Assembly: GCA_048013815.1 (NCBI GenBank)
Contig: CM106586.1
Span: 3,100,001 to 3,164,000 of the forward strand
Direction: 5' to 3'
Origin: Setoptus koraiensis
Taxonomy: Eukaryota > Animalia > Arthropoda
DNA: 64,000 nt
In this document: piece by piece, positions 728-57,500 of the stretch
Numbering within the stretch: the first letter of the stretch is position 1
Layout of the letters: each line of letters begins with the position of its first letter
Position numbers and translations under genes: made by a program
Notes under the pieces: model-generated
Told to the model about the DNA's origin: nothing
Database searches by the model: none
What the model saw: only the letters and a program-made list of their open reading frames with translations

Positions 728-2557
728 TCAAGGGTAGCACACACATCTTGGTTGCGTCACAAATTTCGGCTTGTAATTATATGGTGTATAAAGCGACTGT
801 TGAGGACTGTTCGATTTGATGTTGTATTGTCTGGCCTGTTCTCGTTTTACTTCGTGCTCCGTCTTACCATCATTTTCAAGGATAACCGATTTCGATTCGA
901 AGCGAGCCACATGTTGTTCACGATGCTCTTTTTTTAAACCTTGCTCGTTGTCTCGCGTTTGGCCAAATTGCGAATTGTCATCCTGAGATAATTGTTGTTG
1001 TTGTGCTTGCTGATTAAACTGTTCATCAGCATTATTTTGTTTTTGCTGGACCTCCACTTGTTGTGGATTCTCCTCAAAACGCACTTGATTCTGTGAAAAC
1101 TCTACAGGCACAAAAATCTGCTGAGCTTGTTCCTCAACTCTAACCTGTTGTGGTTGGTTTAGTTGCTCTTGTTTTACTACTTGCTGCTGTTGTGTCGAAG
1201 TTTTCGAAGATGATGATTGGAATGAGGATTTTCTCTGCGTGAATTGTTGTCGTTGCCTAAATGGGGCACCATTGGTAAAAGACTTTACTGCAGACGTAGA
1301 TGTTGTTTGCTTTGTTGATTGTTGTTGAGGTGATACGACTCTCGAAACAGTTTTTTGGGCGAACGCTGGTTGCTTACGACCAAAATCTACTTGATCTTGT
1401 TGTCTGTCAAAGTTGGCGTTTGAACCACTCTGTTGGCTGCTTTCTTCGAAGGCCTGGTTGTTTTGTTCCTGCTGAAATCCTTTTGCTGCTTGCTGGGGTG
1501 ATACAACTCTTGAAACAGTTTTTTGGGCGAACGCTGGTTGCTTACGACCAAAATCTACTTGATCTTGTTGTCTGTCAAAGTTGGCGTTTGAACCACTCTG
1601 TTGGCTGCTTTCTTCGAAGGCTTGATTGCTTTGTTCCTGCTGAAATCCTTTTGCTGCTTGCTGGGGTGATACGACTCTTGAAACAGTTTTTTGGGCGAAC
1701 GCTGGTTGCTTACGACCAAAATCTACTTGATCTTGTTGTCTGTCAAAGTTGGCGTTTGAACCACTCTGTTGGCTGCTTTCTTCGAAGGCTTGATTGCTTT
1801 GTTCTTGCTGAAATCCTTTTGCTGCTTGCTGGGGTGATACAACTCTTGAAACAGTTTTCTGGGCGAACGCTGGTTGCTTACGACTAAAATCTACTTGATC
1901 TTGTTGTCTGTCATAGTTGGCGTTTGAGCCAATCTTTTGGGTGTTCTCCTCAAAGACTTGGCTGTTTTGTTCCCGTTGAAATTCTTTTGTTGCTTGTTGA
2001 GCTGGTGCTTGTCGCTGTTTACCGGGTGATGCCACCAAAACACGCCTGACTTTACCTTTGAATGGCGGTGGACTCTGAGGACGGCTAAAAGAATTGGTCT
2101 TGCCTGGCTCAGTTACTTCAACACTTTGGTCTTGGAATCTAACACCGGTATCTTTACTTGCTTGAAACGAGCGAGACGGCTGAAACACAGTCGGACCAGC
2201 GAAAAAAGCTTGAGCGTTTTCATCTGTTTGTACAGATTTTGCAAATGACGCTCCAGACTCTTTTACCAACTGACCGGGACTTTTAACACTATGTACAGGA
2301 GCAACTAGTCTCACTTTGGACGCTTGGCCGTTGTTTACATCGAAGTAAAAATTGGACGCCTCATCTCCAGGCTGGGGCACCAAATGGGGCACATTATATA
2401 GTTCCGAATCTTGATATGGATTGCTTACAAGAGGCTGATGAGTTCCATAATCTTCGGCCAAGACGACACCTAGTAGGGCGCTAATCCAAATTAGCTGATG
2501 GACGCTGAAAAACTTCTGTTGGGTCTGTAGTGTTTTATTTTTTGAGAGAGAATTCAT
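728..2557 (-). CDS. Secreted Gln-rich protein with internal 56-aa tandem repeats
   Basis: 609-aa ORF with hydrophobic signal-like segment LIWISALLGVVLA|ED, four 168-bp repeats and C-terminal PRCVCYP. The true start is probably on a short upstream exon spliced to an AG near 2500. Confidence 0.8.
   Translation of the reverse strand: MNSLSKNKTLQTQQKFFSVHQLIWISALLGVVLAEDYGTHQPLVSNPYQDSELYNVPHLVPQPGDEASNFYFDVNNGQASKVRLVAPVHSVKSPGQLVKESGASFAKSVQTDENAQAFFAGPTVFQPSRSFQASKDTGVRFQDQSVEVTEPGKTNSFSRPQSPPPFKGKVRRVLVASPGKQRQAPAQQATKEFQREQNSQVFEENTQKIGSNANYDRQQDQVDFSRKQPAFAQKTVSRVVSPQQAAKGFQQEQSNQAFEESSQQSGSNANFDRQQDQVDFGRKQPAFAQKTVSRVVSPQQAAKGFQQEQSNQAFEESSQQSGSNANFDRQQDQVDFGRKQPAFAQKTVSRVVSPQQAAKGFQQEQNNQAFEESSQQSGSNANFDRQQDQVDFGRKQPAFAQKTVSRVVSPQQQSTKQTTSTSAVKSFTNGAPFRQRQQFTQRKSSFQSSSSKTSTQQQQVVKQEQLNQPQQVRVEEQAQQIFVPVEFSQNQVRFEENPQQVEVQQKQNNADEQFNQQAQQQQLSQDDNSQFGQTRDNEQGLKKEHREQHVARFESKSVILENDGKTEHEVKREQARQYNIKSNSPQQSLYTPYNYKPKFVTQPRCVCYP
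1329..2000. repeat. Coding tandem repeat, 168-bp unit x4
   Basis: AAACAGTTTT recurs at 1345, 1513, 1681 and 1849 (period 168). The unit at 1833-2000 is the most diverged. Confidence 0.95.
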
Positions 2558-3756
2558 TTATTCATTAGAGAGATACCGGATATTGATATAATCACCTTGA
2601 ACGTACATCATCATCGATACTAACCATTTTTATGTCTACTCTAATATACCTAAGTTAGTTTGACTCTATTTTTGAATTTCAGGTGATCAAATAGGAATGC
2701 AGAGAACTTGATACAAGATTCTCTAAATTGGGTCTGAGCGCTGAGAAATGGTGATTTGAAAAGAAAAAAGAAATTCAACATGCAACAAATGATGCACAAA
2801 AGTTCGCCACAAGTAAAGTAAAAACTAATGTAATGCTAGAGGAACTTTCACGATTATGGTAATTGACTGATTTGATTAGTGGTTGCAAAAGCAATTACAA
2901 TCAGTGAGCTAAGAATAAAGTGATCAATAGAATGAAACGCACGTTTAGCCAATTATGAGTTCAGGGCAGGTCTTTAATTATGTGATGAGATAAAGAGAGA
3001 TAGAAAGAAGCCAGTCACATCGGTTGTAATGACACGACTAGCGCGATTAGGTAATACATAGTAACAATCAACTTTTGTCTTTTTTACAGCCACAACCAAC
3101 ATGTGGAAATAGAATAGTTATAACTAGTTTCGCTTTTAGAATCCATTGAAAGTGTGATATATCGATGATACTCATAAGTAGGAGTAATTGAGTCGCGACT
3201 GGCAGTAGTTTCATTAAAGGTAGGATGGAAGTTGACATGAGTAATGAATAAAAAGTAATGTATAATAAAACAAGAAGAAAAAGAAGGATGTCATCGCTAA
3301 TTTAAAACAGCCTGGCAGCAGCAGTAGCTACATTGCACTCCTTATTATATCCTATTCACTAGTTCCTCTGATCAGCTTGTATTTGTGGCGATAGGCCGTG
3401 ATTCAAGGGTTGAATTAAAAATTAACTATACTATTTTTCAAGTATCAATAATAAGTTGTTTAGTTGTGGTTGCTTAGTTTTGATTTGTTGGACGTTGTTT
3501 AATTTTGCTATCAACGGGGAATGTCACTGTGTACGAGACACTGTGTATGAGGAATTAAAAAAGTTAGACACCCACGCTCGTGAATCAGTTGGATAAGTGT
3601 TAGTGGTGAACATTATTTAATGATATTCAAAAAAAAAAACCATTTTTGAGCATTGGAGAAATTTTAAGTTTCGCTTGAATTTCTTTTCTACTCTCTTAAC
3701 TAGTTGTTGCGTGAGTTTCCATGGGGTGATATGATCATTATGTATTATGTGTGGAA

Positions 3757-4533
3757 TCATATTTTTGGCGAACACGATGATGATATGACCTTGAGTAAAT
3801 AAATGAGATATGTGTATTGGTCCGGTCTTGGATTATGAATCTTGTACGACATCTTAGATTTCAATTTTATCGTTTGACCTTTATGATATGGCTGACACTT
3901 GTCTTCGTAATGAAAGATTGCTTTTCCATACAAAATATGAAATTGTATCTCTACACCGGCTGGACAAACCTGTTCCTCCTTGAAGCCATTGGGCAATATT
4001 CGCATGAGGGCAACATAGTAGCTATCTTTGGTCAATGTAACTTGTTGAGGTTGTCTGTTGTCTTGTAGAGCTTGCAGAGCTTGCATCACATGATAGGGTG
4101 GCTGGCTGTTATCGACAATGATAGTTTTAGTTGTCGATTGTGTCGTCTCGTCTTCATCTGGAGAGTTCGACGATGGGGACGATGGTGGCGACCAAGAATA
4201 GCGCTGCGATGTTGGCGACAATGTGCCTCGCAATGATGGCATGTCATCTGCGGCGGAACTGCGATTGTTCCATTTTCCTATGATGGCCACCTCAACGTGA
4301 TCACTGTTGCACCCTCGCTGTTGGTGCTTCTTCCATTGAGATCGTCCGCATAATTTTAACAAATCCTGGCGTTCTCTCTCATATTCGTCAGAGAGTTTAT
4401 TGCGTATTTTGAATGTAGTGAATGCCTCCTCGTCGTATTTGTCCCTTACGGTATCGCCAAACACATTGTACCAGTTGTCTAATTGTGGGCACGACGAATC
4501 CGATTGTGACGACGACGCCGACGCTGATTGCAT
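3757..4533 (-). CDS. 258-aa protein with C-terminal cupin resembling CENP-C/Mif2
   Basis: C-terminal YYVALMRILPNGFKEEQ...IQFHILYG...KGQTIKLKSKMSYKIHN...YLIYLLK follows the spacing of the CENP-C cupin (P..K.Q, F.V..G, G, Y.I.N, LLF). Upstream exons are possible. Confidence 0.55.
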   Translation of the reverse strand: MQSASASSSQSDSSCPQLDNWYNVFGDTVRDKYDEEAFTTFKIRNKLSDEYERERQDLLKLCGRSQWKKHQQRGCNSDHVEVAIIGKWNNRSSAADDMPSLRGTLSPTSQRYSWSPPSSPSSNSPDEDETTQSTTKTIIVDNSQPPYHVMQALQALQDNRQPQQVTLTKDSYYVALMRILPNGFKEEQVCPAGVEIQFHILYGKAIFHYEDKCQPYHKGQTIKLKSKMSYKIHNPRPDQYTYLIYLLKVISSSCSPKI

Positions 4534-21336: not shown

Positions 21337-21836
21337 NNNNNNNNNNNNNNNNNNNNNNNNNNNNNNNNNNNNNNNNNNNNNNNNNNNNNNNNNNNNNNNN
21401 NNNNNNNNNNNNNNNNNNNNNNNNNNNNNNNNNNNNNNNNNNNNNNNNNNNNNNNNNNNNNNNNNNNNNNNNNNNNNNNNNNNNNNNNNNNNNNNNNNNN
21501 NNNNNNNNNNNNNNNNNNNNNNNNNNNNNNNNNNNNNNNNNNNNNNNNNNNNNNNNNNNNNNNNNNNNNNNNNNNNNNNNNNNNNNNNNNNNNNNNNNNN
21601 NNNNNNNNNNNNNNNNNNNNNNNNNNNNNNNNNNNNNNNNNNNNNNNNNNNNNNNNNNNNNNNNNNNNNNNNNNNNNNNNNNNNNNNNNNNNNNNNNNNN
21701 NNNNNNNNNNNNNNNNNNNNNNNNNNNNNNNNNNNNNNNNNNNNNNNNNNNNNNNNNNNNNNNNNNNNNNNNNNNNNNNNNNNNNNNNNNNNNNNNNNNN
21801 NNNNNNNNNNNNNNNNNNNNNNNNNNNNNNNNNNNN
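21337..21836. other. Assembly gap (500 N)
   Basis: Run of N. ORF-track entries that span it are artefacts. Confidence 1.
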
Positions 21837-31842: not shown

Positions 31843-34513
31843 ATGAATCTAGCCGTAGCTCCCAGCTTGGCACAGTCGTTAGCACCTTGCAGCAACAACA
31901 GCACTAGCGCAAGCAACAACACCGGCAATATTATTCAACAACAGCAGCAGCAACACCAACATCAACAACAACAGCCCTCGTTGTCGCCTATAGGCGTTAA
32001 ATTAAGCGCATATTATTCTAGCAAATCGGCCAATGGCAGACAGGAATTAGTAATATTGCAACAACCCGAGGAACAACACCGGGCCAGGTACGCCACCGAG
32101 GGCAGCAGGGGCGCCATTAAGGATGTCACAGGTGTCAGTCATCCTGTTGTTAAACTGACAGGCTGTTACAGTAGGCAACCCATTAAATTAGAATGTTACA
32201 TTGGGCACGACAAACACAACGGTTTGCCTCATTTGTTTTACCAGGCCTCGAAAATAAGTGGCAAAAACTCTACACAATGCACCGCTTGCAAGATAGACGG
32301 CACCTCAATTATAGTGATGAATTTGTTGCCAGAGAACGACTTTCAGGCCACAATTGATTGTGTTGGCATTTTAAAAGAACGAAATGTTGATGTTGAACAA
32401 AAGTTGCTCAATTTAAACCGTACCAACAAAATGATTGATTTTGATATATTAAGCCACCACCACCATCATCATCACCACCATCATCATCTGTTGCAACAAC
32501 AGAATCAGAACACCATTCATCAGCATACACATTTGACAAACATGATGCAATTGAATCAACATTTAACCGCAACGCATCATCATCATCATCACAACAGACA
32601 TCCTATGACAACTAGTCCTTTTTCGCGCGAATTAAGCACATTGATGGCGGCCTCAGGACAGTACAGCCAAAATCAGCAACAACAACAATCGTCCTTGTCA
32701 ATTGGGGCCCAGCAACACAATAACTCGGCCAATTCGGTCGCATCATCTAACGGATCGTCGCCAAGCTCTACAATGTCCAGTGTTTTATCAACGTCGTCGT
32801 CGACCCCGTCCTCCGCGAGCAGTATAATTGCCACCAATCAGCTGGTTCAGAGTCTTGACAATAAAATGTTGGCGCTCATGAGTCATTCGACACTCACCAC
32901 CAATGGCACTGGTCAAGGCGCGGCGCCAAATTCAAAGCAGCTTACCAACGGTGCAGCGGGCCTGAGCAGTCTAACCAACTGCAATCATCAAACCACTACA
33001 GGTAATAAGTTAGCTGCCAATAGTAACAACAACTCAACGTTACATAGTACAATCAACAATATTAGTAGTAGAAAAAAATCTGCCAAATGTCGACTGGTGT
33101 TCCGAATTAGACTACCGGAAACTGGTGAGGTTCTGCAAATTATTAGTACGCCAATTGTGTGCACGCAACCAGCTGGACCGCCAGAAATATCTAAGAGATC
33201 ACTAACAAGTGCACCTATCACATTACACAACGTACAACCGGCCTCATCTGTTGGGTCGCCGCCACCTCAATCGATGCTACTATTGCCAAATTCACCTCCC
33301 ACACCATCAACAGTGTCATCCGCGTCGCCTCCAACAACAACACCATCTATAACACAAACAACTCAGCAGCAGCAACAACCACAACAACAATTAGAACTAT
33401 TTATAATTGGCAAGAATTTCCTTAAGGATTCCAGAGTGATATTTCGTAACAATAATAGTGATTGGATTCGTATTGTAGAACCCGACAAAGAGTATCTTAA
33501 CTCTAGCCACCTAGTGTGTCATGTACCTGTTTATGATGGGCCCGAGGTCGGCCCAGATCGACCCCTTGATAGTCAACCAAGTATTATTGAGGTTGTGACG
33601 CTTGTTAGAAGTGGTGGAAAATACTCTGAACCACACACATTCACTTATATCAACACAGCCAAGCAACAATTACTGCAACAACAACAGCAACAACAACAAC
33701 TCCAACAACAACTACAGCGATTACAAATTCAACAACAACAACAGGAGCATCAGACTCAACAGCAACAACAACAAGAGCAACAGCAGCAACAACAACAACA
33801 ACAACAACAATTCCAACAACAACTACAGCAAATACAAATTCAACAGCAGCAACAGCAACAACAACAACAACAGCAGCAGCAGCAACAGCAGCAACAACAA
33901 CAGCAACAACAGCAACAACAACAACAACAACCACAGCAACTAGACCCCCAAGCCGCTCTGCAACTGGTCCAGCAGCAACAGCAGCAGCAACAACAGCAAC
34001 AGCAACTAGACCCCCAGACCGCTTTGCAACTGGTACACCAGCAACAGCAAATAGATCCTCAAGCCCCTTTGCAACTGGTCCAGCAGCAGCAACAGCAACT
34101 AGACCCGCAAGCCGCTCTGCAACTGGTGCAACAGCAAATAGATCCTCAAGCCGCTCTGCAACTGGTGCAGCAACAACAACAGCAGCAACAGCAACTAGAT
34201 CCTCAAGCCGCTATGCAACTGGTCCAGCAGCAACAACAGCAGCAGCAACAACAACAACAACAACAGCAGCAACAGCAACAACAGCAACAACAACAACAAT
34301 TCCAACAACAGCTACAGCAAATACAAATTCAACAGCAGCAACAACAACAGCAACAACAACAACAGCAGCAGCAACAGCAGCAGCAACAGCAGCAGCAGCA
34401 GCAGCAACAACAACAGCAACAACAACAACAGCAACAACAACAGCAACTAGACCCCCAAGCCGCTGTGCAATTGGTCCAGCAGCAACAACAACAACAACAG
34501 CAGCAGCAGCAGC

Positions 34514-34544
<31 letters not shown>

Positions 34545-36060
34545 GCAGCAGCAGCAGCAGCAACAACAACAACAACAACAACAGCAGCAACAGCAACAGC
34601 AACAGCAACAACAATTCCAACAACTACAGCAATTGCAAATTCAACAGCAGCAGCAACAACAACAACAACCACAGCAACTAGATCCCCAATCCGCTCTGCA
34701 ACTGGTCCAACAGCAGCAACAGCAATTAGACCCCCAAGCCGCTCTACAACTCGTGCAACAGCAACAACAGCAACAGCAACTTGACTCCCAAGCCGCTTTG
34801 CAACTCGTGCAACAACAGCAACAGCAACTAGACTCCCAAGCCGCTTTGCAACTCGTGCAACAACAACAACAACCACAGCAACTCGAGCCCCAAGCCGCCC
34901 TGCAACTGGTGCAACAGCAACAACAGCAGCAACAGCAACTGGACCCTCAAGCCGCTTTGCAACTGGCGCAACAGCAACAACAGCAGCAACAGCAATTGGA
35001 CCCTCAAGCCGCTCTGCAACTCGTGCAACAGCAACAACAGCAACAACAACAACCACAGCAACTAGACCCTCAAGCCGCTCTGCAACTCGTGCAGCAGCAA
35101 CAACAGCAACAACAACTAGACCCTCAAGCCGCTCTGCAACTCGTGCAACAACAACAGCAACTAGACTCCCAAGCCACCCTGCAACTGGTCCAACAGCAGC
35201 AGCAACAGCAATTGGACCCCCAAGCCGCTTTGCAACTGGCGCAACAGCAACAACAGCAGCAACAGCAACTGGACCCTCAAGCCGCTTTGCAACTGGCGCA
35301 ACAGCAACAACAGCAGCAACAGCAATTGGACCCTCAAGCCGCTCTGCAACTCGTGCAACAGCAACAACAGCAACAACAACAACCACAGCAACTAGACCCT
35401 CAAGCCGCTCTGCAACTGGTCCAGCAGCAACAGCAGCAGCAACAACAGCAACAACAACTAGACCCCCAAGCCGCTTTGCAACTGGCCCAACAGCAACAAC
35501 AACAACAACCACAGCAACTCGACCCCCAAGCCGCTCTTCAACTGGTCCAGCAGCAACAACAGCAACTAGACCCCCAAGCCGCCCTGCAACTGGTCCAGCA
35601 GCAACAACAGCAACTGGACCCCCAAGCCGCTTTGCAACTGGCGCAACAACAACAACAGCCACAGCAACTCGACCCTCAAGCCGCTCTGCAGCTGGTCCAG
35701 CAGCAGCAACAACAGCAACTGGACCCCCAAGCCGCTGTGCAATTGGTCCAGCAGCAACAACAGCAACAGCAACTGGACCCCCAAGCCGCTCTTCAACTGG
35801 CGCAACAGCAACAACAGCAACTAGACTCCCAAGCCGCTCTGCAACTAGTCCAGCAGCAGCAACAGCAACAGCAGCAGCAACTAGATCCCCAAGCCGCTTT
35901 GCAACTGGCGCAACAGCAACAACAGCAACAGCAACTTGAGTCCCAAGCCGCTTTGCAACTGGTCCAGCAGCAACAGCAGCAACAACAGCAACAAAGGCTA
36001 GATCCCCAGGCCCCTTTGCAACTGGTGTACCCCAACTTGATATTGTATGATTATGTATGA
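31843..36060 (+). CDS. NFAT5: NFAT5/TonEBP-type Rel-homology transcription factor with poly-Q repeat tail
   Basis: QPEEQHRARYATEGSRGAIKD, IDCVGILKERNVDVE, RKKSAKCRLVFR, PIVCTQPAGPPEI and IPT motif IIGKNF...SRVIF. The first in-frame ATG is at 31843; the ORF-track start at 31648 is a GTG inside a donor-like GTAAGTG, so upstream exons are likely. Confidence 0.93.
33660..36030 (+). repeat. Coding CAA/CAG poly-Q tracts interleaved with about 32 copies of LDPQAALQLV
   Basis: Counted from the translation; the DNA core is GACCC(C/T)CAAGCCGCT(C/T)TGCAACT. Confidence 0.97.
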
Positions 36061-40181: not shown

Positions 40182-40586
40182 TTAGTATCCTCCACTTGAA
40201 CCTCCCGAGGATCCACCGCCGTAACCTCCTGAAGATGATCCACCTCCGTAAGATGAACCACTTGATGAGGAACCACCGTATGATGAGCCACCTGATGAGC
40301 CGCCGTATGAAGATCCACCACCGTAAGATTGTCCACCTCCGTATGATGGCATGTCATAGGATTGCATGGACATTGATTTCATTGGTAATGGTATTGGGAT
40401 TGGGATGATGATTTTCTTCTTCTTCAATAGAGCCAATAATGGTAGGATTTCTTTCAATTTCTTCATCATCTTCTTTTTGCTCATGGCTTGTGTTTCTTGT
40501 ACTTGGCTGACCAATATGAGGTTCAACACTACTATGGCCAAGAATATGAGCGATTTTGTTCTTGTTGACGTTGTTAAACTAGACAT
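40182..40586 (-). CDS. Small secreted Gly/Ser/Tyr-rich protein (cuticle/cement-like)
   Basis: Signal peptide (LIFLAIVVLNLILV...TQA), then KKKMMKKLKEILPLLALLKKKKIIIPIPIPLP and a (GGS/SYGG)n tail. Confidence 0.85.
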   Translation of the reverse strand: MSSLTTSTRTKSLIFLAIVVLNLILVSQVQETQAMSKKKMMKKLKEILPLLALLKKKKIIIPIPIPLPMKSMSMQSYDMPSYGGGQSYGGGSSYGGSSGGSSYGGSSSSGSSYGGGSSSGGYGGGSSGGSSGGY

Positions 40587-43500: not shown

Positions 43501-44427
43501 TGGTGACACACAAACGCTGCTGGACAGACGCTGGCACAACAAACGTCATGCGTGACTAATTCGCAGTTGTCTCGGCTTATGATGTGATTAAGCCAATTAT
43601 GCAATATGCCAAGACGCATTATATTGCCAATTATTGCGGCGAGGCGACATGAGCGAAAGTGCGGCATCACTGTCGCCGTTGCTGGCGCTGGCGCTGGCCC
43701 TGGCGTGCATAAAATGGCGCTCTCAGCAGTGATTTGTTTGCTGGTCGGCTGGTCGGCCGGTCGGCCGGTCGGCAGTGTCCAGGCCGACGAGTGGCCAACA
43801 ACAATCGACCGCTGGACAGCTTTGCATGTGTCAATCAATCAATGGACAGCGCGGCCAGTTTGTTGACAGGCAGCGCATATCACAATGGCGCTAACCGCAT
43901 TGCACACAACCAATCAATTGACAACTAACACCAATGTGTGTTTATGCGTTTGTTATGCAACCAGCATGTGCGGTGACACTCGCTCGGTCGCACAACAACC
44001 GCCGACAACAAAGCGCCGACCCCGTGCGAGATAAAATAAATAAATATTAAATAAAAGAAATATTCAAATATTTGAATATTTAAATATAACTGCCGCTAAC
44101 AACACACACACACACACACACACACACACTGTTGAACAGTGACCGTTCGACAGTGACTGCTGGAATGCCAGCACAATTAGCTTGACAACTGGTGGAAGTG
44201 CATGCGCAATTGTCGCTGTTGGCTGTGGGCGAGCTGGCCGGTTGCGTCGCCAATGGCCAGCACTTGGCCTTTGACAACACTGACACTACTGCTAATAATA
44301 ATAATAAAAGCCCACTGGCCGGTGGAGTGTTTGCAGTTCGCTGGAATCACTCACTTAGAGCCAATGAGCGACAAAAACCAAAGATTTATGCGCGATAAAA
44401 ATGGGCCCTCCTCTCGCTCGCTCTGGC

Positions 44428-44494
44428 CGGCAGAGTCCGGCAGCAGAGTCCGGCAGCAGAGTCCGGCAGCAGAGTCCGGCGACACAGTCCGGCG
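44428..44494. repeat. 13-bp minisatellite (cagagtccggcag) x about 5
   Basis: Direct tandem copies are visible. Confidence 0.9.
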
Positions 44495-46769
44495 AGCCCG
44501 AGTGGGCAGTTGGTCGGCGGCAGAGTGTCGCTGAAATGGCGGGACACCGACACATTGACACGACGACATTGCCAGTTGGCCGGATCGCCGGGCCGCCAGA
44601 GTGAGAGAGCGACTCGCAAAACTGGCCAAACAGCCTGCCGGCGAGCAGCCAGCGGGATCTGATGTTATCTGCAACCTGTTGATAGCATCACAATCAAACT
44701 GATGCTTTTAATTGCTGTCGCTGCTTGGCCGGACTTGTGCGCGATGCCCAGTTATGAGTGTCGCCGCTTGTTTGTATGTGGCCGCTTATTTGTCCAACCG
44801 GCCAAAACAACGACAACGACAACGGCAACGGCAACGACAAATCAACTAATGAATGTTGAGCACATGACTCGGCATGCAGTGTCTCGATTGCAGTGTCTCG
44901 ATTGCAGTGTCTCGCTGATCTTTCATTTCCGTGTGCACATTTGCGCCTCGAGACACTGAGCGCACGACAGCGACATGCAGATGGACAAGTGATACGCACA
45001 ATGGGCCAGTGGACAGAGGTGTCCAATTGAGCGCACAGATACAGTTTGTCAGTTGATAAACATTGCGGCCAGTTAAAAATCGCCTGTCCGCCGCACATTG
45101 TTTGCCGGTATAAATAAAACAAACACAATTGGGCAGATTGTGTCCGAGTTGCCAAGTGTATAAATAATCTTATCTGATCACTTGGTTGGCGGTCGTCGAA
45201 CATTGTTGCGCCGCTCGCCGCTTGCTTGTCGCTTGTTGCTGTTGTTGTGCAACAATTCTTGTGACGCAACACAATTAACGCGACACAAGAACAACTTGCA
45301 AACAATTAGCGCCACGTCCGGCGCTGATCACGACGTTCGCGACGGCGCTCACGACGAGCGAGTCGCCACACTCGGGCACATTCGACAACATTCGAGCACA
45401 TTCGACAGAATTCTACGGTTTCGTCGACGAAACGAGCGCTGTTGGCGCGTCGAGCCGCCAGCCAATGGCTGGCTCAACGGCGCAAATGGTCGCTGGCACC
45501 GGCATTCGGTAATTGGCCATTAGACCAATGGTCCGCTCGGGCCCATGTCCAACCGACACAAGCTGGCCAACGCCGACTGTGAATGCGGCCAGTATGAATG
45601 CGCTTGCGTTGCCAGCGCGCTGCAAAGGTTGCTCGCTGGGCCGCTCGACATGGCACCGGATTGAAATTATACGCATGCAATAATGGGCTCGCTGCGTGTG
45701 CGTTTGGCAAATTAACTGTCAGACCTCTCACTCACAGCCAGTGAGCCAGCGAGCCAGTGAGCCAGCGAGAAACAAAGCAACCTGTTGGACCTGTTGGCGT
45801 TTTGCACAAGCGCAAGATTGCTTTTACTGACAACTCGCATGCGGATAATTTATTAATTGTGCCAGTGTCTTGGTGTGCGCAAAGAACAATAATAGCCGTC
45901 CGACTGTCTCCGCTTTCGTCCGCTCTCGCGCTCTCTCGCTCTGTCCGCTCGCCGGTTGTTGGCCCGTCGCTCGTTTAGCTGTCGGTTGCGTCGGTCGTCG
46001 GTTGTGTCCGCTGCGTCGGTTGTGTCCGGCTGCAGTCATTACCACCACAGTGGTCATGAGCGTGCCCGACACTGATTGCGCTACTGACCAATCGGGCCGC
46101 AATCAAGCGAACGGCGCCAATCAACAGAATAGGAGAAAGTTAATTAAACTTTGCTCTCCGCCTGATTGGCTCTCTTTTCATTAACTTGACCACCACAACA
46201 TTTCGGCCGACCGCAAGCTCGCCGCTGACCGTACGCCGCGCATGATACGCGTAGCGGTCTCGCCGTTTGTTTGTTTGTTTGTTTGTGTTTGTTTGTTTGT
46301 TTGTTTGCTTGTTTGTTTGCTTGTGTGCCGATCGGCATTAACGGCGGCCGCACGCCGAATCGCCGGTCTCAGTGCGTTGGCACGCAGTGCACATTCGATC
46401 TATCATTAGGCATCATGTAAGCGATGCTTATTATTGCATCGCGCAATCGCCAATTGGCTACCTCGTTCGCGGGCCGCCACTCGTAATGATAACAATAATG
46501 ATTATAATTAACTCTCTATTAGAGAGTCTCAAATGTATCGGCCGGCGTTGGCACCGGCGTTACTGGTATCGCCAGCAGTTGGCCAGCAATATTGATGACG
46601 AAACGCAGTGCAACATGCCCAATGTTGCGAGAGAGTTGCATTACGTAACATAACTAGCGCGTTGCTCATGACCAGTGGCTCGTTGTTTGTGACTGGTCGT
46701 GGCGCGCGCAAATCAAATAAAAGCTGGTTGCGAGCGCAACTTTTGCGACTGTTGCGACTCTCGTAACTG

Positions 46770-46866
46770 ACCAATTGTAGGCTAACCAAATGTGAGATAA
46801 ACAATTGTGGGACAACCAATTGTGAGACAACCAATTGCGAGCTAATCAATTGTGGGCCAATCAATC
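46770..46866. repeat. 15-bp-period minisatellite, about 6 units, CAATTG core
   Basis: accaattgtaggcta / accaaatgtgagata / aacaattgtgggaca / accaattgtgagaca / accaattgcgagcta / atcaattgtgggcca. Confidence 0.9.
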
Positions 46867-49825
46867 TCGTTGGCGCAAGCATAATCGATCACTCATCCGG
46901 TCGGCGGCGGCGGCGGCACAATGAATATCGATCGAGTTGACGCTCATTGTGAGTGCGATGACCGTTGGGCGGCCCCGCTCGAGGCACGCGCTACACACAC
47001 ACACAATGGATCGCCGAGAGACAAAGACAGATATGCCCAGGATATACTCTCTATAGTACTCTATAGACGCGCTCTACAGCATGCATACTATGCATTGCAT
47101 AGTAAGAAACGGCAAGCGAACAACAGGTGAACTTGTAACGGACAACGGGCATTGCAGATAACGGGCATTGCAGATAACGGGCGTTGATGATAACGAGCTG
47201 TGCAGGGAAACCAATTGATTTTGTGTCTCGCTTGTGTCGTGTTGGTACGTTGTGCACAAACAGCCAGACACTGTGTCGAGCGGACTGTGCCGACACACAA
47301 AATTGGAAGCCATTAAGAGCTGTTGGTTGGTTGTTGGTTTGGTTGGGCCATTGTCGGGCTCTGGTCAAGTCGGCGGATCGATCGGCTCGATCCGCCAAAT
47401 TCTCGCCAATCGATCATTCTTATCGCTGTCGAGTCGCTTGTTACTTGCGCGACTGGCTTGTTGGCTGCGCGACTCGTTGCGCCTGTTGGCTGCGTATTAT
47501 TGTCAATCACGCGACGAGATAAACAACAGCTGATAGGTTGCGTAACATGGGCACACAATGGACGGCGGCGAGCGAGCGTAACGCTGTTGTAACGGATTGA
47601 TAGAAACGGATTGATCACGATTCCATCGCCAGTCGCCCATCGCCAGTCGCCCAGCGTCCGTCGCCCAGCGTCCGTCGCCCGTCGCCAAGTTGGCCAACTA
47701 TCACCTTTGGCGAGACACACACACAAAGTGAGTGTGGCCAAATTGGCCAACTGGAGCTGGCGGCCGCAAACTGACCAAGATAGCCCACTCGGCGGATTAT
47801 TTGTGGCGGCCATACGGACAGCGGCGGGTATTGATCAATAATAGCGAGCGCGCACACAATGCGCTCGCCTAGCAATCATTGCAGTCACCTATTTGATAGA
47901 TTATACAGCAACAATATTGTTGTTGTTGCACTATCTATCAATGTGTCAGCTGGTGCTGGCTTGCCGGCCAGAGTCATCAGCGTGTGATGATGATAATATC
48001 AATCAATTGTGTTTGGTCGCTCACAACTTGTCGAGAGTGTTATAATTTCCACACACACACACACACACACGCGCACTAGTACATTGACCATCGGGTGAAC
48101 GATGAGCGGACGCAACAAGTGTCGACCGGCGACACCTTGACTCGGCTTGACTCGCAACTGTCGCCATTGTTCGCATGTAACAACAATGCCGGCCGCCATA
48201 AACATACGTTGCCGCCTCGACACAAATGGCCAGCGACAACAGCGACGACGGCGACCGCAACGATGGCCGGTCGGCCGCTTGTAACGGGCCGCTCGTAACG
48301 GGCCGCTCGTAACGGGCGACCGGCCATCGTTGCCGATCGTTGCCGATCGTTGGTGTCGGTGGCCCATTATGGTTCAGTGTGCGAGCGAGCCGAAAAAGAT
48401 CCGATAATTAATCAGCTGCACAGGCGGCAGTATCGGCAAATGAGCGCTCTCTTTGGTCGCAAGCTCGCCAGGGATCGCTCACGATGAGAGCGCGCGTGAG
48501 TTGATCTGGCTGACACACAAGATGTGTGCGTTGTGTAACAGTCGGCGCCAAGATGTAAGCACGATTATGAAGTGTGCAATAAACTAGTCATCATTTATCG
48601 GCTTCAACATAACTAATATTCAGCCCATTCAGCACACAAAGGCTCATCCATTGTCCGTGACTTTGGCTCTGTTAGCCGATATTTCCCTATTACCTATTAC
48701 CGTGCGTCTAACAGTTCCAACCGACTGGCAAGCTAGCGGCAACAGCAACACGCCAACAGCGACAGCGACACGCCAACAGCAACAGCGGCGGCCCAAACTG
48801 GCAACGCTTGCGCAACGTTACCAGTAAAACCATCAAAATCGATTTCCTACTTAACAGGCGACAGCGCCATATTGCCGTTCGCTTTCCTGTCTTTTTGCGC
48901 TCGCTTTGGCTGTCGCTCAGTGTGTAACCTTGGCCAGTGGCGGCGCAAAAAGAAGCGGCCAGAGCGGCGGCCCGAGCGGAGGCGAGGGCAGAGGCAAGAA
49001 AAGTGCAGAATGAGATGATTATCATGCGGACGCTCGAATCATGCAAATGCGCTCGCTACAAGACTGACGGCGGCCAGTCAGTGCATGGCGGAGCTCTATG
49101 GTGATATGGCTGCAATTGTAATTGTCGGAGTGCGCAAAAAGCGGGCCAGCGCTCGGCCGGTTTCCTCGAGCCGACCAGCCGACCAGCCGGCCATCGATAG
49201 CCATCGGTCGGGCGAGTGTTTGAATTTTGGAATTAACGGCAACAGCAACAACAACAATTAACTAGCGCTATTATGCATCTTTTTCGGTTTTGGGCTCATC
49301 CAGCGCTCAATGCCAACTCGATCCGGCCAATGCGACTCGCTCGGCCGGCAACTTCTTATTAGCCGGCTTGGCTCTCTTGGCTCGCATGAGTCTAGGGCCA
49401 AACTAGTTGCCGTTGCGTTGTATGCCGTGTCCGCTGGCCGTGTGCTGGCCGTGCCAATGCAACTCGTTTTGGCGATCAATTATTCCACTTGTGGCGTATT
49501 AATTTGTCCGTTGTTGTGTCGGCCCGCTTGCGTCGCTAACGTCACCGTTGCGCACACTGAGCCGTACAGGTGATACTAACACTAACACTATCACCTGTGT
49601 CAGTTGAGCGCGGCCAAGTTGGGCATATGCTCAACTCGGTCGCGCTCGCATTATCGCAAAACTAAACTCGACACTTACGCCATGACGATTATATGCGCTG
49701 CGCGGCCCACGCCGTTGCATTCCGATAATGTGGCCCAATAATACCGTTATGTAACCTGTAATGTGTAATATTGGGCCGACAATCCGCAATAGCGTCCGGC
49801 CAACGCACGCATGTTCGGCAGTTGG

Positions 49826-49924
49826 CGAACTGGCGAACTGGCGAATGCGCGAGTGCGCGAATATGCGAATATGCGAATATGCGAATATGCGAATATGCGA
49901 ATATGCGATCATGCGATCATGCGA
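49826..49924. repeat. 8-bp minisatellite (gcgaatat) with variants
   Basis: ggcgaact x2, gcgaatat x about 6, gcgatcat x2. Confidence 0.9.
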
Positions 49925-50397
49925 GCAGAGAAAGGAAAGTCTTTTGTTATAAATGTAAATTACCTGCCACGCTCGGCCGTGCACAGATGATGCCCAATCA
50001 ATCACGGCATCGGCAGTCGGCAGTCAAGTTGCAACCAGCAACAAGTTGGCCGCTCAATCATGCCAATAACTCAATAACATGCTGCCACCGTGTTGCTTAT
50101 GCCGTGCTGCCCCCAACCAGCAGCACATAAGCCATTCATTCCGGTCAGGGTTCGTGTTCGCGTTCGCGTTGCGTAAGATTAGTATAATCGATCGGTTTCG
50201 TTTGGACAACCGCAACATCATGTTGTAATTGTTGTTGCGAAGATGTCTTTTGTTCGCTGGCGCTCCAACTGACCACTGCAAGCAATGTTTGGCCCGCTTG
50301 ACCGATAAGCGCCGCTCGATGCTCGCCAATTGGTTTATCCTTTTTGGGCACTCCATTCCGTCGGCTGCACACATTCAAACACACACCGTCAGCAGCA

Positions 50398-50921
50398 TAT
50401 TGAAGGTTAATTTGGGCAAAGAAAAAAAGATTGATTACCACTTCCTACTCAATTCCTCCTTTCACTAAATTGAATGACCTCTCTCTCTCTCTCTCTCGCT
50501 CGTTCGCCATTTTAATATAGTGTTTGACAGTAATTAATATGTACATATATTGAATTAAGTTGTATCCATTGATCGCCGTAATGGTGTTGGTGTCAGTAGT
50601 TGTTGGTGTAAGTGTGTGTGTGTGTGTGTTGCCTTTGTTAGCGTCCGTTCGGCCATGCTGTGCTGTGTTGCATTATAATATAAAAATAATAATGTGCGCA
50701 CGATGATAGACAAGTGGAAGTCAATTTAGATTGACCCCAGCAGCAACGACATGCGAAAGTGATCGCTGATCAGATATCAACATCTCGGCTCGGCTTGTGT
50801 GAGCTCGCTGTGTTGGCGCCGGGTGGTGTCGACAACCGCAATTCGATTCTCTCGCTCACTTTAAATTGTTGCCCTCTTCTCGCCCTAACAACAACCGCAA
50901 CTATTATTCATCAAGCTAACG
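50398..50921 (+). repeat. Left arm of long inverted repeat
   Basis: Reverse complement of 51787-52302. Both arms give the same ORF start MIADQISTSRLGLCELAV in the ORF track (50759+ and 51945-). Confidence 0.97.
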
Positions 50922-51786
50922 GCTGTTGCGCTTTAGTGAAATGCGAGACTCACTTCATTTCTAATAAATCAATCTAATCTTTCTCACAACTCTAGCTGTG
51001 TGTGCAACAACAACTCACTCTTATCTGTCCAGACGCACACTTTAATTGCCTGGGCACAAGTGGGGCCGACACGATTATCGTCATCGTCATCATGTGAGCA
51101 TTAGATGAAAATATTAGACGGTGAGCAGCTAACAAATGAGTCTCATTATAGTTGCGTCAGATCAGCACACACACACACACACAGCTAACTGTGCCCGCTG
51201 TTAATATTGTCCACTTGCATCCCATTATAATGGTGGGAAGAACGTCCGGCCAATGGAAACAAAACCAGTCGGCGGCAGCCTGCTCTTGCAATGCGCAAGC
51301 GATCCCCATTAACACGGCACAATATTAATTAGATGATTATTTTCGTTGTCGTCGTTGTCATTGTTGTGCTCGTAGGCGCACTTAACAAGCGGCTCAACAT
51401 GCAACAAGTAGCAATCGTGTTTACCGCTAGAGAGCTCGTCATTATTATCAATGTTTGTTGTTTCGTTTCGCAACCGATCGAGGCTCACACTGAGCATCGT
51501 TGCGTTCGGCCACTATCTTTCTTTGCAATGTGCTGCTGCGGAGAAATATTTTGGTGTGCCCATCAGTTCGCTGTCATCACTCGGCAGCAGGGTATTTCCG
51601 GCGCTGAGGCTCACTTAATAGGAGAACAAAACTGGGCAAATTTAGACCCCGTGAGCAAAGTTGCGCCATTCACGGAGCCCACAGTGATGCTACAGTGATG
51701 AATGTGAGATTAGATCAATTCATTGCAAATTAAGCGTGTCCCACCTATCAAGCGATCTAACCAACTATGTACGAAACCGTGAAAGT

Positions 51787-52302
51787 CGTTAACTTGATAA
51801 ATAATAGCGAAACGTTGTTAGGGTGAGAAGAGGGCAACAATTTAAAGTGAGCGAGAGAATCGAATTGCGGTTGTCGACACCACCCGGCGCCAACAGCGAG
51901 CTCACACAAGCCGAGCCGAGATGTTGATATCTGATCAGCGATCACTTTCGCATGTCGTTGCTGCTGGGGTCAATCTAAATTGACTTCCACTTGTCTATCA
52001 TCGTGGGCACATTATTATTTTTATATTATAATGCAACACAGCACAGCATGGCCGAACGGACGCTAACAAAGGCAACACACACACACACACTTACACCAAC
52101 AACTACTGACACCAACACCATTACGGCGATCAATGGATACAACTTAATTCAATATATGTACATATTAATTACTGTCAAACACTATATTAAAATGGCGAAC
52201 GAGCGAGAGAGCGAGAGGTCATCCAATCGAATGAGAGGAAGAATTGAGCAGGAAGTGATAATTAATCCTTCTTTTTCTCCTTTCTCAAATTAACCTTCAA
52301 TA
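51787..52302 (-). repeat. Right arm of long inverted repeat
   Basis: Aligned by eye to 50398-50921. The core differs only by 2 substitutions, a 2-nt indel and differences in the (CT)n tract. Confidence 0.97.
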
Positions 52303-53552
52303 CATCGAAGAGTAGTAAGGCCGGTTGTTGTTATTATTGTAAACGGTCAAGTTTTGCCTCTTAATTCATTCATGCTATATTGCCCAATACCAAGATCGGA
52401 TAATTAACGGCTATTTCTCGTATAATTAGGTATGCCAACACATAGGAAACCAAACATAGTGGATGTCAATTGAAAGGAAGCCAATGAATAAGTGGTTTAT
52501 CGTTGAAGTTAGCCCACTCGAAAAAATCAAGATCCCATTTTGGAATTAATTAAATAACTCATTTATTTATATTATCCGGTATTTATATCATATATTTATA
52601 TATATACCGGTCCATGAACTGTCTTGTATATCCATATTGAATGGTGAGATGTATCGTTACAGCTACATAAGGGTGTGATATGGCCAGTGACCAATTGTAC
52701 TGCTACTTCGCCATTTGCTTAGATGATCTTCCAGGGGAATTGTTATGGTGAGTACAGCAGAGACTAATTCATCCAAAGATGATTGTTGATAACAAAATTT
52801 CTCTAACAGAGGCCGCTTACTTCAGCTAGAGAAAACAAAAATTTCCCTGAAAAAAATGTGATTCGAAGGCTCACTGGCAATTGAAGGCAACAAGATTTCA
52901 TTATAAGCAAACGAACAAAAAAGAACAATGAGAGTAACAGCAAGAGAAAAGTCTTTATCATTACATCATCTTTTATTTATTAGTACAAGCAAGTCACACA
53001 TAATACTGCGAACTACGTTGACTGATTTGCCCCAATTTTTTTCTTAATCTTTATCGCTCTATCAGTATTAATTGTAGCAGAAGCTGCAATGCGAAAGTAG
53101 TTGGCTTCCTGAAAAGGGGATTATATTATTCTCCTTGTTTATAACTTGGCCTGAAGTAGCTTATGGATTAACTGGATTATGCTATCATGATCAATTACTG
53201 TTTTCTAAAGTTGTTTTTGAAAATCATTAGCATTTAAAAAAACGAACAGCTTGAGTGAATGCTGTCATAGCAAAACCTTGATCTGATTGACCACAACTTG
53301 ATAAATTGGTAGCGTCCATTTTCTGACTGAACTATTTGAAAGACCTTGCGGAAATGCATCTTGATTCAGTTGACAAATGTCACCGCTTCTCCGTTGATGT
53401 GACATTTGTCGACGAAATCAATCCAATATCCTGAGATAAACTGACCAGCGGCGAAAGGGAACCAAGAACTATCAATTAAACGGATATGAAGCGAGAAGAA
53501 GGTTCGCTCTCAGATTTAAGATTCTCTCGCAATTGATATTAATCTACACTAG

Positions 53553-53833
53553 GTATCAGGTTCTTGTTTGGTAAGATGCGATTTGCTCAATTACGCAACA
53601 CTTCGGTGTCGCGTTATATTGGTTACAAGAGGCCTCATTTGAAAAGAAAAGTCCAACCAGGTGAAAGAGAGTTAACCTATTGGTCAAAAATAGTTCAAGT
53701 TTATGCCACCGCGCGACGATTGTGGCGCCTCGATGGCTGTATTGAAATGAGCGCTTGGCGTCTGGCTAAAAAACAAAATTGGAATTTGAAATTGGCGCTA
53801 GAACAATTGCGCAAAGTTAAACTGCCTATGTAA
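53553..53833 (+). CDS. Possible terminal exon or small ORF of an unidentified protein
   Basis: Acceptor-like ACTAG at 53548-53552, open frame to TAA at 53831-53833, ATG at 53576. The helical C-terminus IEMSAWRLAKKQNWNLKLALEQL is ELM2- or UBA-like. Confidence 0.35.
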
Positions 53834-54514
53834 CTCGTGCGTCTCGTTTGTCGCATGCGCCTTTCGCCTTTTACAACCTCGTGCTCGCTCGTGCAATCGT
53901 GTAGCAGATTTCCGCATACTGCAGTTGACGCGCCTTTCCTCCACTGGAACTGCGCCGAGGAACATGTGTGCCGAAAAGCGCACCATCTGATATAACGCTT
54001 ATCGTTGCGTTGCGTGAATATTTGTCTATCGACAGGCAATTCGATAGTCGGTGCAGCAAGATCAGTGCTGCCGACTCGCATGAATACTATCGAATGAGTT
54101 CACACGATAGCAACGATATTCGTTTGTTGAGCAACAAATTCCACATTGGACGAACTATTCCACATGTGAGAGTACATGCGCGATATCCTTTATTTATCGG
54201 ATCGTGTTCAAATAAAATTGACTACACACATTCGACACACGGTAAAACGTTTTCTCATCTTTTGTCTCGATCAAACAGTTAATAATCATTTGGCCGTTAC
54301 ACAGCTCAACTGCTCAAACTGTCCCGAATATTAATTATCACAATCGTCTGGCACCATTGCTAACATTGCCGCCACTACTATTATTGTCACTATAATCATT
54401 ATCACAACCAGCATCAATTATAAGAACACACCTAACACTAGCAGCCCTGTGGCTTGAGAATTCTTTCCGGAATAAACCAGCGCCACAGACAAACCCTTGC
54501 AAGCAACCAGCAAC

Positions 54515-57500
54515 ATGCCTGTGGGCAGCGAGCCTAGCGACCCCAGGCTCACGTCAGCCTCGGTTCTGGCCTCAGCCTCGACCTCGGCGGGATCTTCGCG
54601 CTCCTCGACATCGGCAGAGCAAAAAAATCAAACCGGCAGCGCCAATCTTTCCGTTGTAGTAAGTATACACCGAATGCCCATCGCTCACACGATTGTCCCA
54701 CACTCTTGCCCACAATAACACTAACATGCCCATCATCTTTTGCGCTCAATCAACAGGTTCCCGGTGACAACTATATCCACCGCCAGCTGCCCTTATTGTC
54801 GGACAAAGGTCGCCATGAGCTCCTCAAGATGCTCTCAAAACCAGATGAGCGTGTTAAATACGCTCTATACGTTGCCAAAACATTTCCCTCGCTACTTGTC
54901 GATCTTTTGTACCGAATCGCTGTCGATTCAACGAAGCTTGCTCAGAAAGAGGAAAACAATCCACAAAGAAACAATCCCAGCGATTCGTCAAGTGAAAATC
55001 CCAACTCCAATGTTGTTCAGAATGGCGATCAATCTAACCAAAACCGCGAGCTTTCTGTCGATGCAATCAGGAACCAATTCAAGCCATTCTTTTTGTTTTG
55101 CGAACTCATTGGCAAATGTCCTCAAATAACTAACTTCATTTATAATTATTTCGAAAAAAGTTCCTTTCAACCGTTACCTACAGACCTTTACGTTGTCTCG
55201 CTCACCACAAACCCCAAACGCATAGAACTTGTATACAAGCAACCAGGATTCGATGACAATCGCATGATTGACATACTTACATGCTATCTCACCTACTTAA
55301 CCTATGATCCAGAATTCTTCAGCACCATTTGGAACTGGTCAGAACTAGGCAAATTTCTTCTTACTCATATTAATGATGAAATTAGATACCTGTCCGCCTG
55401 TTGTTTAGCCATTATCACTAAGCCAACGAGAGAACAATATCAGAGATTCTTGAGGAAACACTCTCTGCCTACAAGTCTTCAGCATAAATTCAGCAACCTC
55501 TTTGATGATAAGTTCATTCCATTAGTCGAAACAGATCTTCAAGCAGCAAAAACACTCGCGAAGCACTACGACAGTACCACTCCGTACAATTACTGTGACA
55601 AAGAATTTGCAAACATTGCCGATGTTCTTATAATTAAGAAAAAATCACGAGATACTTTAGAAAGTAACAAAATTGAAGACTACATCAAAGTGTCTTCTTT
55701 GCTCACTCATCTGTCAACTGTTGCCTACTCGATATCTATTGGTAAACCTTGTCTCATCAGAGGGCCTGTCGGATCGGGAAAAACCGCTTTGCTTGACTAT
55801 ATTGCCTCTGAGACAAATAGACCGGAACCGCCAAGCTTCATCAGAGTTCAAGTTGGCGATCAGATTGATAGCAAACTTCTTATCGGTTCCTATGTGTGCA
55901 CCGAGCTACCTGGTCAATTTGAATGGAAGCCTGGCCCGTTAGCTTTAGCGATATCCCAAGGATTGTGGATTGTTTTTGAAGATATAGACTTTGCTTCATC
56001 TGACATGATCAACGTGATACATTCTGTGATCGAAAACAGATCTCTAGAGTCAGTTTCTAACTGCCCCATGAAATTGAATCTAGTTCATCCAGATTTCAGG
56101 ATATTTTTCACTCAAAGAGTCACTGCTTATGGGCGCATCTCTTCGGACATGATGAAGGCTGGCCTTGGGTTCATTGAGCGAATATGTAATGTGGTAGATT
56201 TACCTTCTCTGGGTGATGGTGATCTCATTGAAATCATAAACTCTAGATTTGGTCTAAATCAAATATCTGAAAAACTAGTCAAGATATATAATCTCACATC
56301 CACTTCTTTATCAGAAGCAGCTGTTGGATCGACCAGGAAAATATCTTTACGTGATTTGTTCAAACTATGCAAAAGATTACATATCAACAACTTCGCGAAG
56401 GAAGATCTTATATTATCTCAAAAGGAGTTGGAAGGTATATTCCTTGACACCATAGAGTGTTTGCTGAGGTTTCTATCACAGGAACCGCTGATTGATATTG
56501 CTTACAAGATAGCGGCTGAACTCAACCTTTCTCAACCCGAAGTTGTTAGATTATGTATTGAACGAAGCCCTGAGATCGGTGTTGGTAGTGACAAAGTCAA
56601 CATTGGTAGACTAGCATTGAAAATCAATCCAAAACAACCTAACACGCCATTTCCCATTGCCTACACCCGCCACTCCCTCTGTCTTATGGAACGTATTGCT
56701 TCGAGTGTCAAGTTCGGAGAAGCTGTTCTTCTTGTTGGTGAAACTGGAGTTGGTAAAACAACTATCGTTCAACACATGGCTCAATTGCTCAATACAAAGC
56801 TCGTTGTTATAAATCTAAGCCAGCAATCAGACTCATCAGATCTGATGGGAGGTTTCAAACCAGTCGAATTGAGTCACATCATCCAACCCATAAAAGATGA
56901 GCTAGAATCACTTTTCCATGCGACTTTCAACGCATCAGAGAATAGCAAATTTCTGGGTCATATTTCCACTTGCTCCAATAACCAGAAATGGATGCCCTTG
57001 CTACGCCTGATTCAGCAACTCTACTTTAAGGCAGTAAAGCGACAAATATCCTCTCCACTATTGAAACGCTGGTCTGATCTACAATCGAAATCCGACCAAC
57101 TGTTGAAAAGACTAAAACTCGACTCCAAGCGTTCACCCCTAGCATTATCTTTTGTGGAGGGTTCTTTGATGAGAGCCGTAAGAGAAGGCCACTGGATACT
57201 GTTAGATGAAGTCAACCTGGCTGAGGCTGAGGTTCTCCAATGCTTGGTTGCTATCTTGGATTCCATAGAAAAGCCCTACATTCACATGTGTGATCCGTGC
57301 AATGGCCCGATACGCATTAGAAAACATCCAGAATTCAGAGTGTTTGCTTGCATGAATCCATCAACAGACGTAGGAAAGCGAGATCTAACCACTGGGATAC
57401 GTAATAGGTTCACTGAGATATTTTTTGACGATATCACAAATAGAAGTGATCTCCGTTTGATTGTTAACTCCTACTTGAAAGACTCCGGAATATCATCCGC

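Follow-up and report, generated by a model that had tools for sequence, protein, structure and literature searches.

A small non-coding palindrome upstream of an arthropod Midasin gene, with a near-identical core in decayed arms that was probably homogenised by gene conversion

The window analysed here, a 64-kb stretch of DNA taken as a whole, carries a small, single-locus, non-coding palindrome, an ordinary structural feature in kind, whose core bears a clear signature of gene conversion. It probably arose as an old local inverted duplication, the core of which has been homogenised, recently or recurrently, by gene conversion from arm to arm. A palindrome maintained by gene conversion had been put forward in a sequence-only reading of the same DNA, and our analysis supports that proposal: a sharply bounded core lies within older, decayed homology, there are two copies, and the hallmarks of a transposon are absent.

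A repeat search and a gapped arm-to-arm alignment confirmed the inverted repeat at 50398-50937 and 51771-52302 (Table 1); all other long inverted repeats of the window are low-complexity sequence. The repeat search returned three collinear arm segments that match almost perfectly, with weaker ones outside them, and alignment of the left arm with the reverse complement of the right gave 501 identities in 545 columns. Faint homology between the arms (~70%) reaches further inward, to ~50980 on the left and ~51707 on the right, and past these points palindromy is absent from the spacer.

Table 1 The palindrome and the downstream gene, in window coordinates.
Feature	Position	Strand	Remarks
Left arm, decayed outer edge	50398-50490		~15% substitutions plus indels against 52212-52302; terminal (CT)n tract, 6 nt longer than that of the right arm
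Left arm, near-identical core, 391 nt	50491-50881		contains (GT)n, TATAAA at 50679, and GTAAGT at 50608 after a 9-codon ATG ORF
Left arm, decayed inner edge	50882-50937		~22% substitutions; indel cluster at 50893-50898
Spacer, single copy, 0.83 kb	50938-51770		AATAAA on the + strand at 50963
Right arm, decayed inner edge	51771-51824		from the arm alignment
Right arm, near-identical core, 387 nt	51825-52211		collapsed contig at ~2x depth in 4/4 runs
Right arm, decayed outer edge	52212-52302		from the arm alignment
Intronless Midasin (MDN1) ORF, at least 3057 codons	54829-64000	+	extends past the end of the window

Differences between the arms were counted column by column as events, giving 33 over the 545 columns: 16 in the outer edge, 3 in the core and 14 in the inner edge. 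Of the three core events, two are indels, of GT at 50612 and of TG at 50809, and the third is a G/C substitution at 50698/52006. Substitutions affect 1 of 387 aligned sites in the core, against 13 of ~85 in the outer edge and 11 of ~50 in the inner edge, with Jukes-Cantor distances of ~0.003, ~0.17 and ~0.26, respectively. Divergence is uneven along the arms far beyond chance: when the 33 events were placed at random on 545 columns, a 395-column window with four or fewer events arose in 0 of 200,000 trials. Because adjacent parts of the arms contrast 60-100-fold in divergence, a single duplication that then decayed evenly is excluded. The G+C content of the core (0.44) and of the edges (0.34-0.45) is uninformative as a trace of biased conversion. 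The near-perfect core and decayed edges described in the sequence-only reading were thus reproduced by alignment, and again by independent short-read assemblies. Its tally of core differences came close, although the core holds two 2-nt indels rather than one, and the second substitution that it counted, at 50882, is the core boundary.

The reality and copy number of the arms were assessed from contigs and depths over 48800-54400 in four public runs (X1, X3, X4 and X6), which represent at least three samples. The core assembled as one collapsed contig in every run. A 1003-nt contig (50852-51854) spans the spacer and enters the core at each end, the left-flank contig reaches the (CT)n tract and stops there, at 50468, and a separate right-flank contig starts at 52182. 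Core depth was 114.5 in X1 (spacer and flanks 59.6), 265.5 in X3 (128-134), 228-283 in X4 (127-140) and 28.8 in X6 (13-16), a ratio of core to single-copy depth of ~2 in every run, with the spacer and both outer edges at 1x. As the depth of the core is about twice that of the spacer and of both flanks, the core is present exactly twice per genome. At the 50698/52006 site, X3 and X4 show the base of the left arm in their collapsed contig and X1 shows that of the right arm; the X6 contig breaks exactly at this position. The core substitution is inconsistent across samples, and the arms therefore differ at approximately the level of polymorphism.

Palindromes are a known cause of errors in long-read assembly and polishing, and an assembler could in principle have made one of the arms or the identity of the core. 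We regard this as extremely improbable for the present locus. In the four short-read assemblies, which are independent and come from no fewer than three samples, the core is a single contig at 2x, the two outer edges are different from one another and stand at 1x each, and the 1003-nt contig joins the spacer to the core at both ends. Assembly artefact was dropped as an explanation on the contig graph and depths of the four runs. The sequence-only reading had itself pointed to two ways in which it might fail, an arm created in assembly and a core belonging to a high-copy transposon family; the 2x core with its two distinct 1x outer edges in four assemblies speaks against the first, and arms at 2x with the rest at 1x against the second.

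For the origin of the structure we propose that ~0.55-0.6 kb of non-coding DNA was duplicated locally, and inverted, long ago, which would have produced one locus in which two arms flank a single-copy spacer of 0.83 kb. Non-reciprocal intrachromosomal copying between the arms would then have overwritten the central 390 bp, either once recently or repeatedly. The ends of the arms, lying outside the conversion tracts, would have drifted apart to K ~0.17-0.26. Tracts may end at heterology in the form of indels or microsatellite length, where heteroduplex extension should halt, and an edge that escaped conversion would diverge further, so that the boundary would sharpen. One observed boundary of the core coincides with the 6-nt difference in (CT)n length at 50479-50490, the other with the indel cluster of the inner edge. 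Two of the differences left in the core are dinucleotide slippage indels, which belong to the fastest types of mutation, and the third is a possibly polymorphic substitution. Gene-conversion tracts in Drosophila are a few hundred bp long, and a 390-bp tract falls within that range. One recent conversion event and continuing conversion would both fit this single genome.

Arm-to-arm conversion that keeps the arms of palindromes >99% identical is well documented in mammals, where it is the accepted explanation (PMC8600007, PMC8327919, 10.1101/800185). The mammalian X/Y ampliconic palindromes described in these studies resemble the present locus in their inverted arms, unique spacer, converted part of >99% identity and decay outside it. 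They differ in size and content, with arms of 10 kb to Mb, against arms of ~0.5 kb that are gene-free here. Sex-chromosome linkage, and concerted evolution between species, would be hypothetical for the present locus. Classical palindromes are defined by gene-carrying arms of over 8-10 kb; the arms here measure ~0.54 kb and contain no ORF that matches a family. Arm identity is well above the expectation from the age of the duplication, taking the core (K ~0.003) against its own edges (K 0.17-0.26) in a comparison that is purely internal to the locus.

Identity of the two cores might also be explained by purifying selection rather than copying, if each arm carried non-coding DNA with a function, for example a regulatory module, a promoter plus first exon or an RNA gene of an unknown type. 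Each core has a TATAAA (at 50679 on the + strand and at 52020 on the - strand) and a 9-codon ATG ORF followed by GTAAGT (50581-50613 and its mirror), and in both arms these are directed into the spacer. GAGA/CT, GT and GCCAT-type motifs are present in the core as well, and a large essential gene lies downstream, all of which would suit an element of this kind. Mirrored motifs would, however, arise easily in GT-rich low-complexity sequence such as this, and we give them no weight. Selection would moreover have to hold 390 consecutive bases, dinucleotide repeats and AT-rich runs included, at 99.7% identity beside sequence with 15-22% divergence, which is implausible.

Searches of known families yielded nothing in support of such an element. 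For ten ORFs within or near the repeat, Pfam gave nothing better than E = 0.19, and a hidden coding sequence or domain was dropped on this result. The whole window gave 0 matches in Rfam at gathering thresholds and, at E ≤ 1, one chance-level match outside the repeat; with nothing credible in Rfam, a known RNA family was likewise dropped. We consider selection on a non-coding element very unlikely as the cause of the identical core. Conversion and very strong selection on both copies would be inseparable within one genome; we infer that the identity of the core comes from conversion rather than selection, and that the palindrome has no function of its own.

The locus resembles foldback and MITE-like transposons in that long terminal inverted repeats enclose non-coding DNA and a transposase is missing, and it could be read as the remnant of one. 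It differs from them in being a single locus, in lacking a target-site duplication and in having its termini least conserved. A target-site duplication was sought at the repeat ends and none was found, the flanks reading ...CAGCAGCA / TATTGAAGG... on one side and ...CCTTCAATA / CATCGAAG... on the other. No part of the element has a further copy in the 64-kb window except for simple repeats. All four read sets show just two copies of the arms and a single copy of the spacer and of each edge. The termini of the arms are their most diverged parts, although recognition by a transposase would conserve them. A transposon family was dropped on the 2x/1x depth, the lack of copies in the window and the lack of a target-site duplication, and we judge a transposon remnant highly improbable.

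The palindrome lies 2.5 kb upstream of the first ATG of the intronless Midasin ORF, in a 14-kb stretch (~41 to 54.8 kb) that has no credible ORF. The first 40 kb of the window are gene-dense, with an Ost-alpha transporter, a PP2C, a pyridoxal decarboxylase, an NFAT-like Rel-homology gene and a glutamate dehydrogenase. Midasin matched unnamed proteins of ~5300 aa with E = 1e-180, and named midasins were matched as well. For region 1-600 of the protein the best match had 42% identity and was again among unnamed ~5300-aa proteins, on contigs of 18-36 kb; named midasins from a mite, a beetle and an aphid are 27-31% identical to the Midasin N-terminus, and a search with 700 aa of the N-terminus gave no match at 1e-10. 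The best matches of PP2C (50-63%) are also unnamed, and the nearest named one, at 55%, is from a mite. The nearest named relatives are mites, with protein identities from 30% (Midasin N-terminus) to 55% (PP2C), and with best matches of 42% for Midasin and 50-63% for PP2C no recorded sequence comes from a close relative. An exact protein look-up of the spacer ORF found no record of it, and metagenomes scanned with a 26-mer of the core gave no match. The contigs of the deep, even, DNA-like runs add up to only 56-74 Mb, which points to a small arthropod genome.

Several other features of the window were recorded. Just left of the palindrome, at 49841-49924, is a (GCGAATAT)n array with a word depth of 750-4000 in the DNA runs, against ~135 for single-copy sequence. 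This depth is far above single-copy, and the 8-mer satellite is therefore abundant elsewhere in the genome; the contigs of all runs break or vary at the array. The region 44000-50000 has a G+C content of 0.51-0.53, against ~0.40 around it, and is full of short tandem repeats with units of 7-45 nt, with no credible ORF. On the minus strand, 40182-40586 holds a 134-aa ORF that starts like a signal peptide, is rich in Lys in the middle and ends in a Gly/Ser/Tyr-rich tail; an identical protein for this small secreted-protein ORF is recorded from just one Logan contig, 2 kb long (L001). Dozens of degenerate repeats, ~57 nt apart and in two families (D1 and D2), make up the C-terminal tail of the NFAT-like Rel-homology gene (33680-36060, + strand). 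Four tandem 168-nt units, three of them 93-96% identical, lie at 1315-2118 inside a minus-strand ORF of 609 aa (728-2557), which had no match in Pfam. An assembly gap of 500 N occupies 21337-21836.

The palindrome might also be a functional hairpin-RNA (hpRNA) locus, in which a single transcript over both arms would form a ~500-bp stem and be diced to endo-siRNAs, by which a target would be silenced in trans. The core would then be kept identical by selection on pairing or on complementarity to the target, possibly together with conversion. If transcribed, either strand is predicted to fold with ~500 inter-arm pairs, at a predicted minimum free energy of -1132 or -1164 kcal/mol for the two strands against about -500 for shuffled sequences; the sequence-only reading had anticipated a stem of 400 bp or more from a spanning transcript, and the predicted folding agrees. 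The locus is intergenic and non-coding, and the length and identity of its arms resemble those of Drosophila hpRNAs, as far as these are presented in PMC8728187 from the literature cited there. As cited in that paper, Drosophila hpRNA loci (Okamura 2008, Czech 2008, Lin 2018) are comparable to the present one in being non-coding, with a near-perfect stem of a few hundred bp and a loop, and in lying outside transposons; they are different in that the stem here is unlike a copied gene fragment, the present locus is known from DNA alone and the host is not a fly.

Other properties of the locus argue against hpRNA function. The stem consists of microsatellites and AT-rich sequence of intergenic type, not of a copied exon, and the + strand AATAAA of the spacer stands only 26 nt past the left arm. 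Complementary sequence was not found elsewhere in the 64-kb window, and a third near-identical copy in the genome is ruled out by the 2x depth, although a diverged target may lie elsewhere. Edge transitions, scored for a + strand transcript, were compatible with G:U pairing in 3 cases and incompatible in 7 in the outer edge, and compatible in 4 and incompatible in 2 in the inner edge; in these small numbers there is no strand-consistent G:U-compatible bias for either strand. A search of public runs restricted to RNA returned only runs of unknown kind, and none known to be RNA was found to contain the locus. The base rate is also low, since long inverted repeats number thousands per invertebrate genome: LIRBase holds 297,317 from 77 invertebrate genomes, and in rice only a few hundred gave hpRNAs or siRNAs (PMC8728187). 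LIRBase repeats resemble the present locus in having arms matched at ≥80% and a loop under 100 kb, and the locus stands out among them only in that its divergence has two tiers, with the core near-perfect and the edges decayed. Taking both sides together, we consider a functional hpRNA locus unlikely.

One of the runs could have been taken for RNA. X1 is of unknown kind, and its depth is uneven, ranging between 0 and 60x within 5 kb, with a peak at the repeat. Its contigs join + strand 53845 to the reverse complement of 55221-55244, 1.4 kb downstream in Midasin, at a 6-nt microhomology (CGTTTG), and a further contig joins + strand 54037 to the reverse complement of 56231-56256, 2.2 kb downstream and also in Midasin, at a 4-nt microhomology (CAAT). 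Together with the uneven depth, these strand-switch contigs look like amplification chimeras, though they might reflect a real structural variant. X1 was dropped as evidence of RNA: its depth is uneven, but the strand-switch chimeras at 4-6-nt microhomology led us to read it as amplified DNA.

Two more far-reaching roles were considered. The palindrome could be a working hpRNA/endo-siRNA gene in a mite-like arthropod outside the insects, or the 0.83-kb spacer upstream of Midasin could flip back and forth by recombination. Arm-to-arm conversion would keep the stem perfect in either case, and we think it distinctly unlikely that one of them applies. Under the preferred explanation, conversion within an old inverted duplication, the locus offers a clean small-scale case in which conversion between inverted copies leaves a sharply bounded identical core within decayed homology. 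Should the palindrome after all be an hpRNA gene, it would be of interest as one in a lineage where such genes have not been described.
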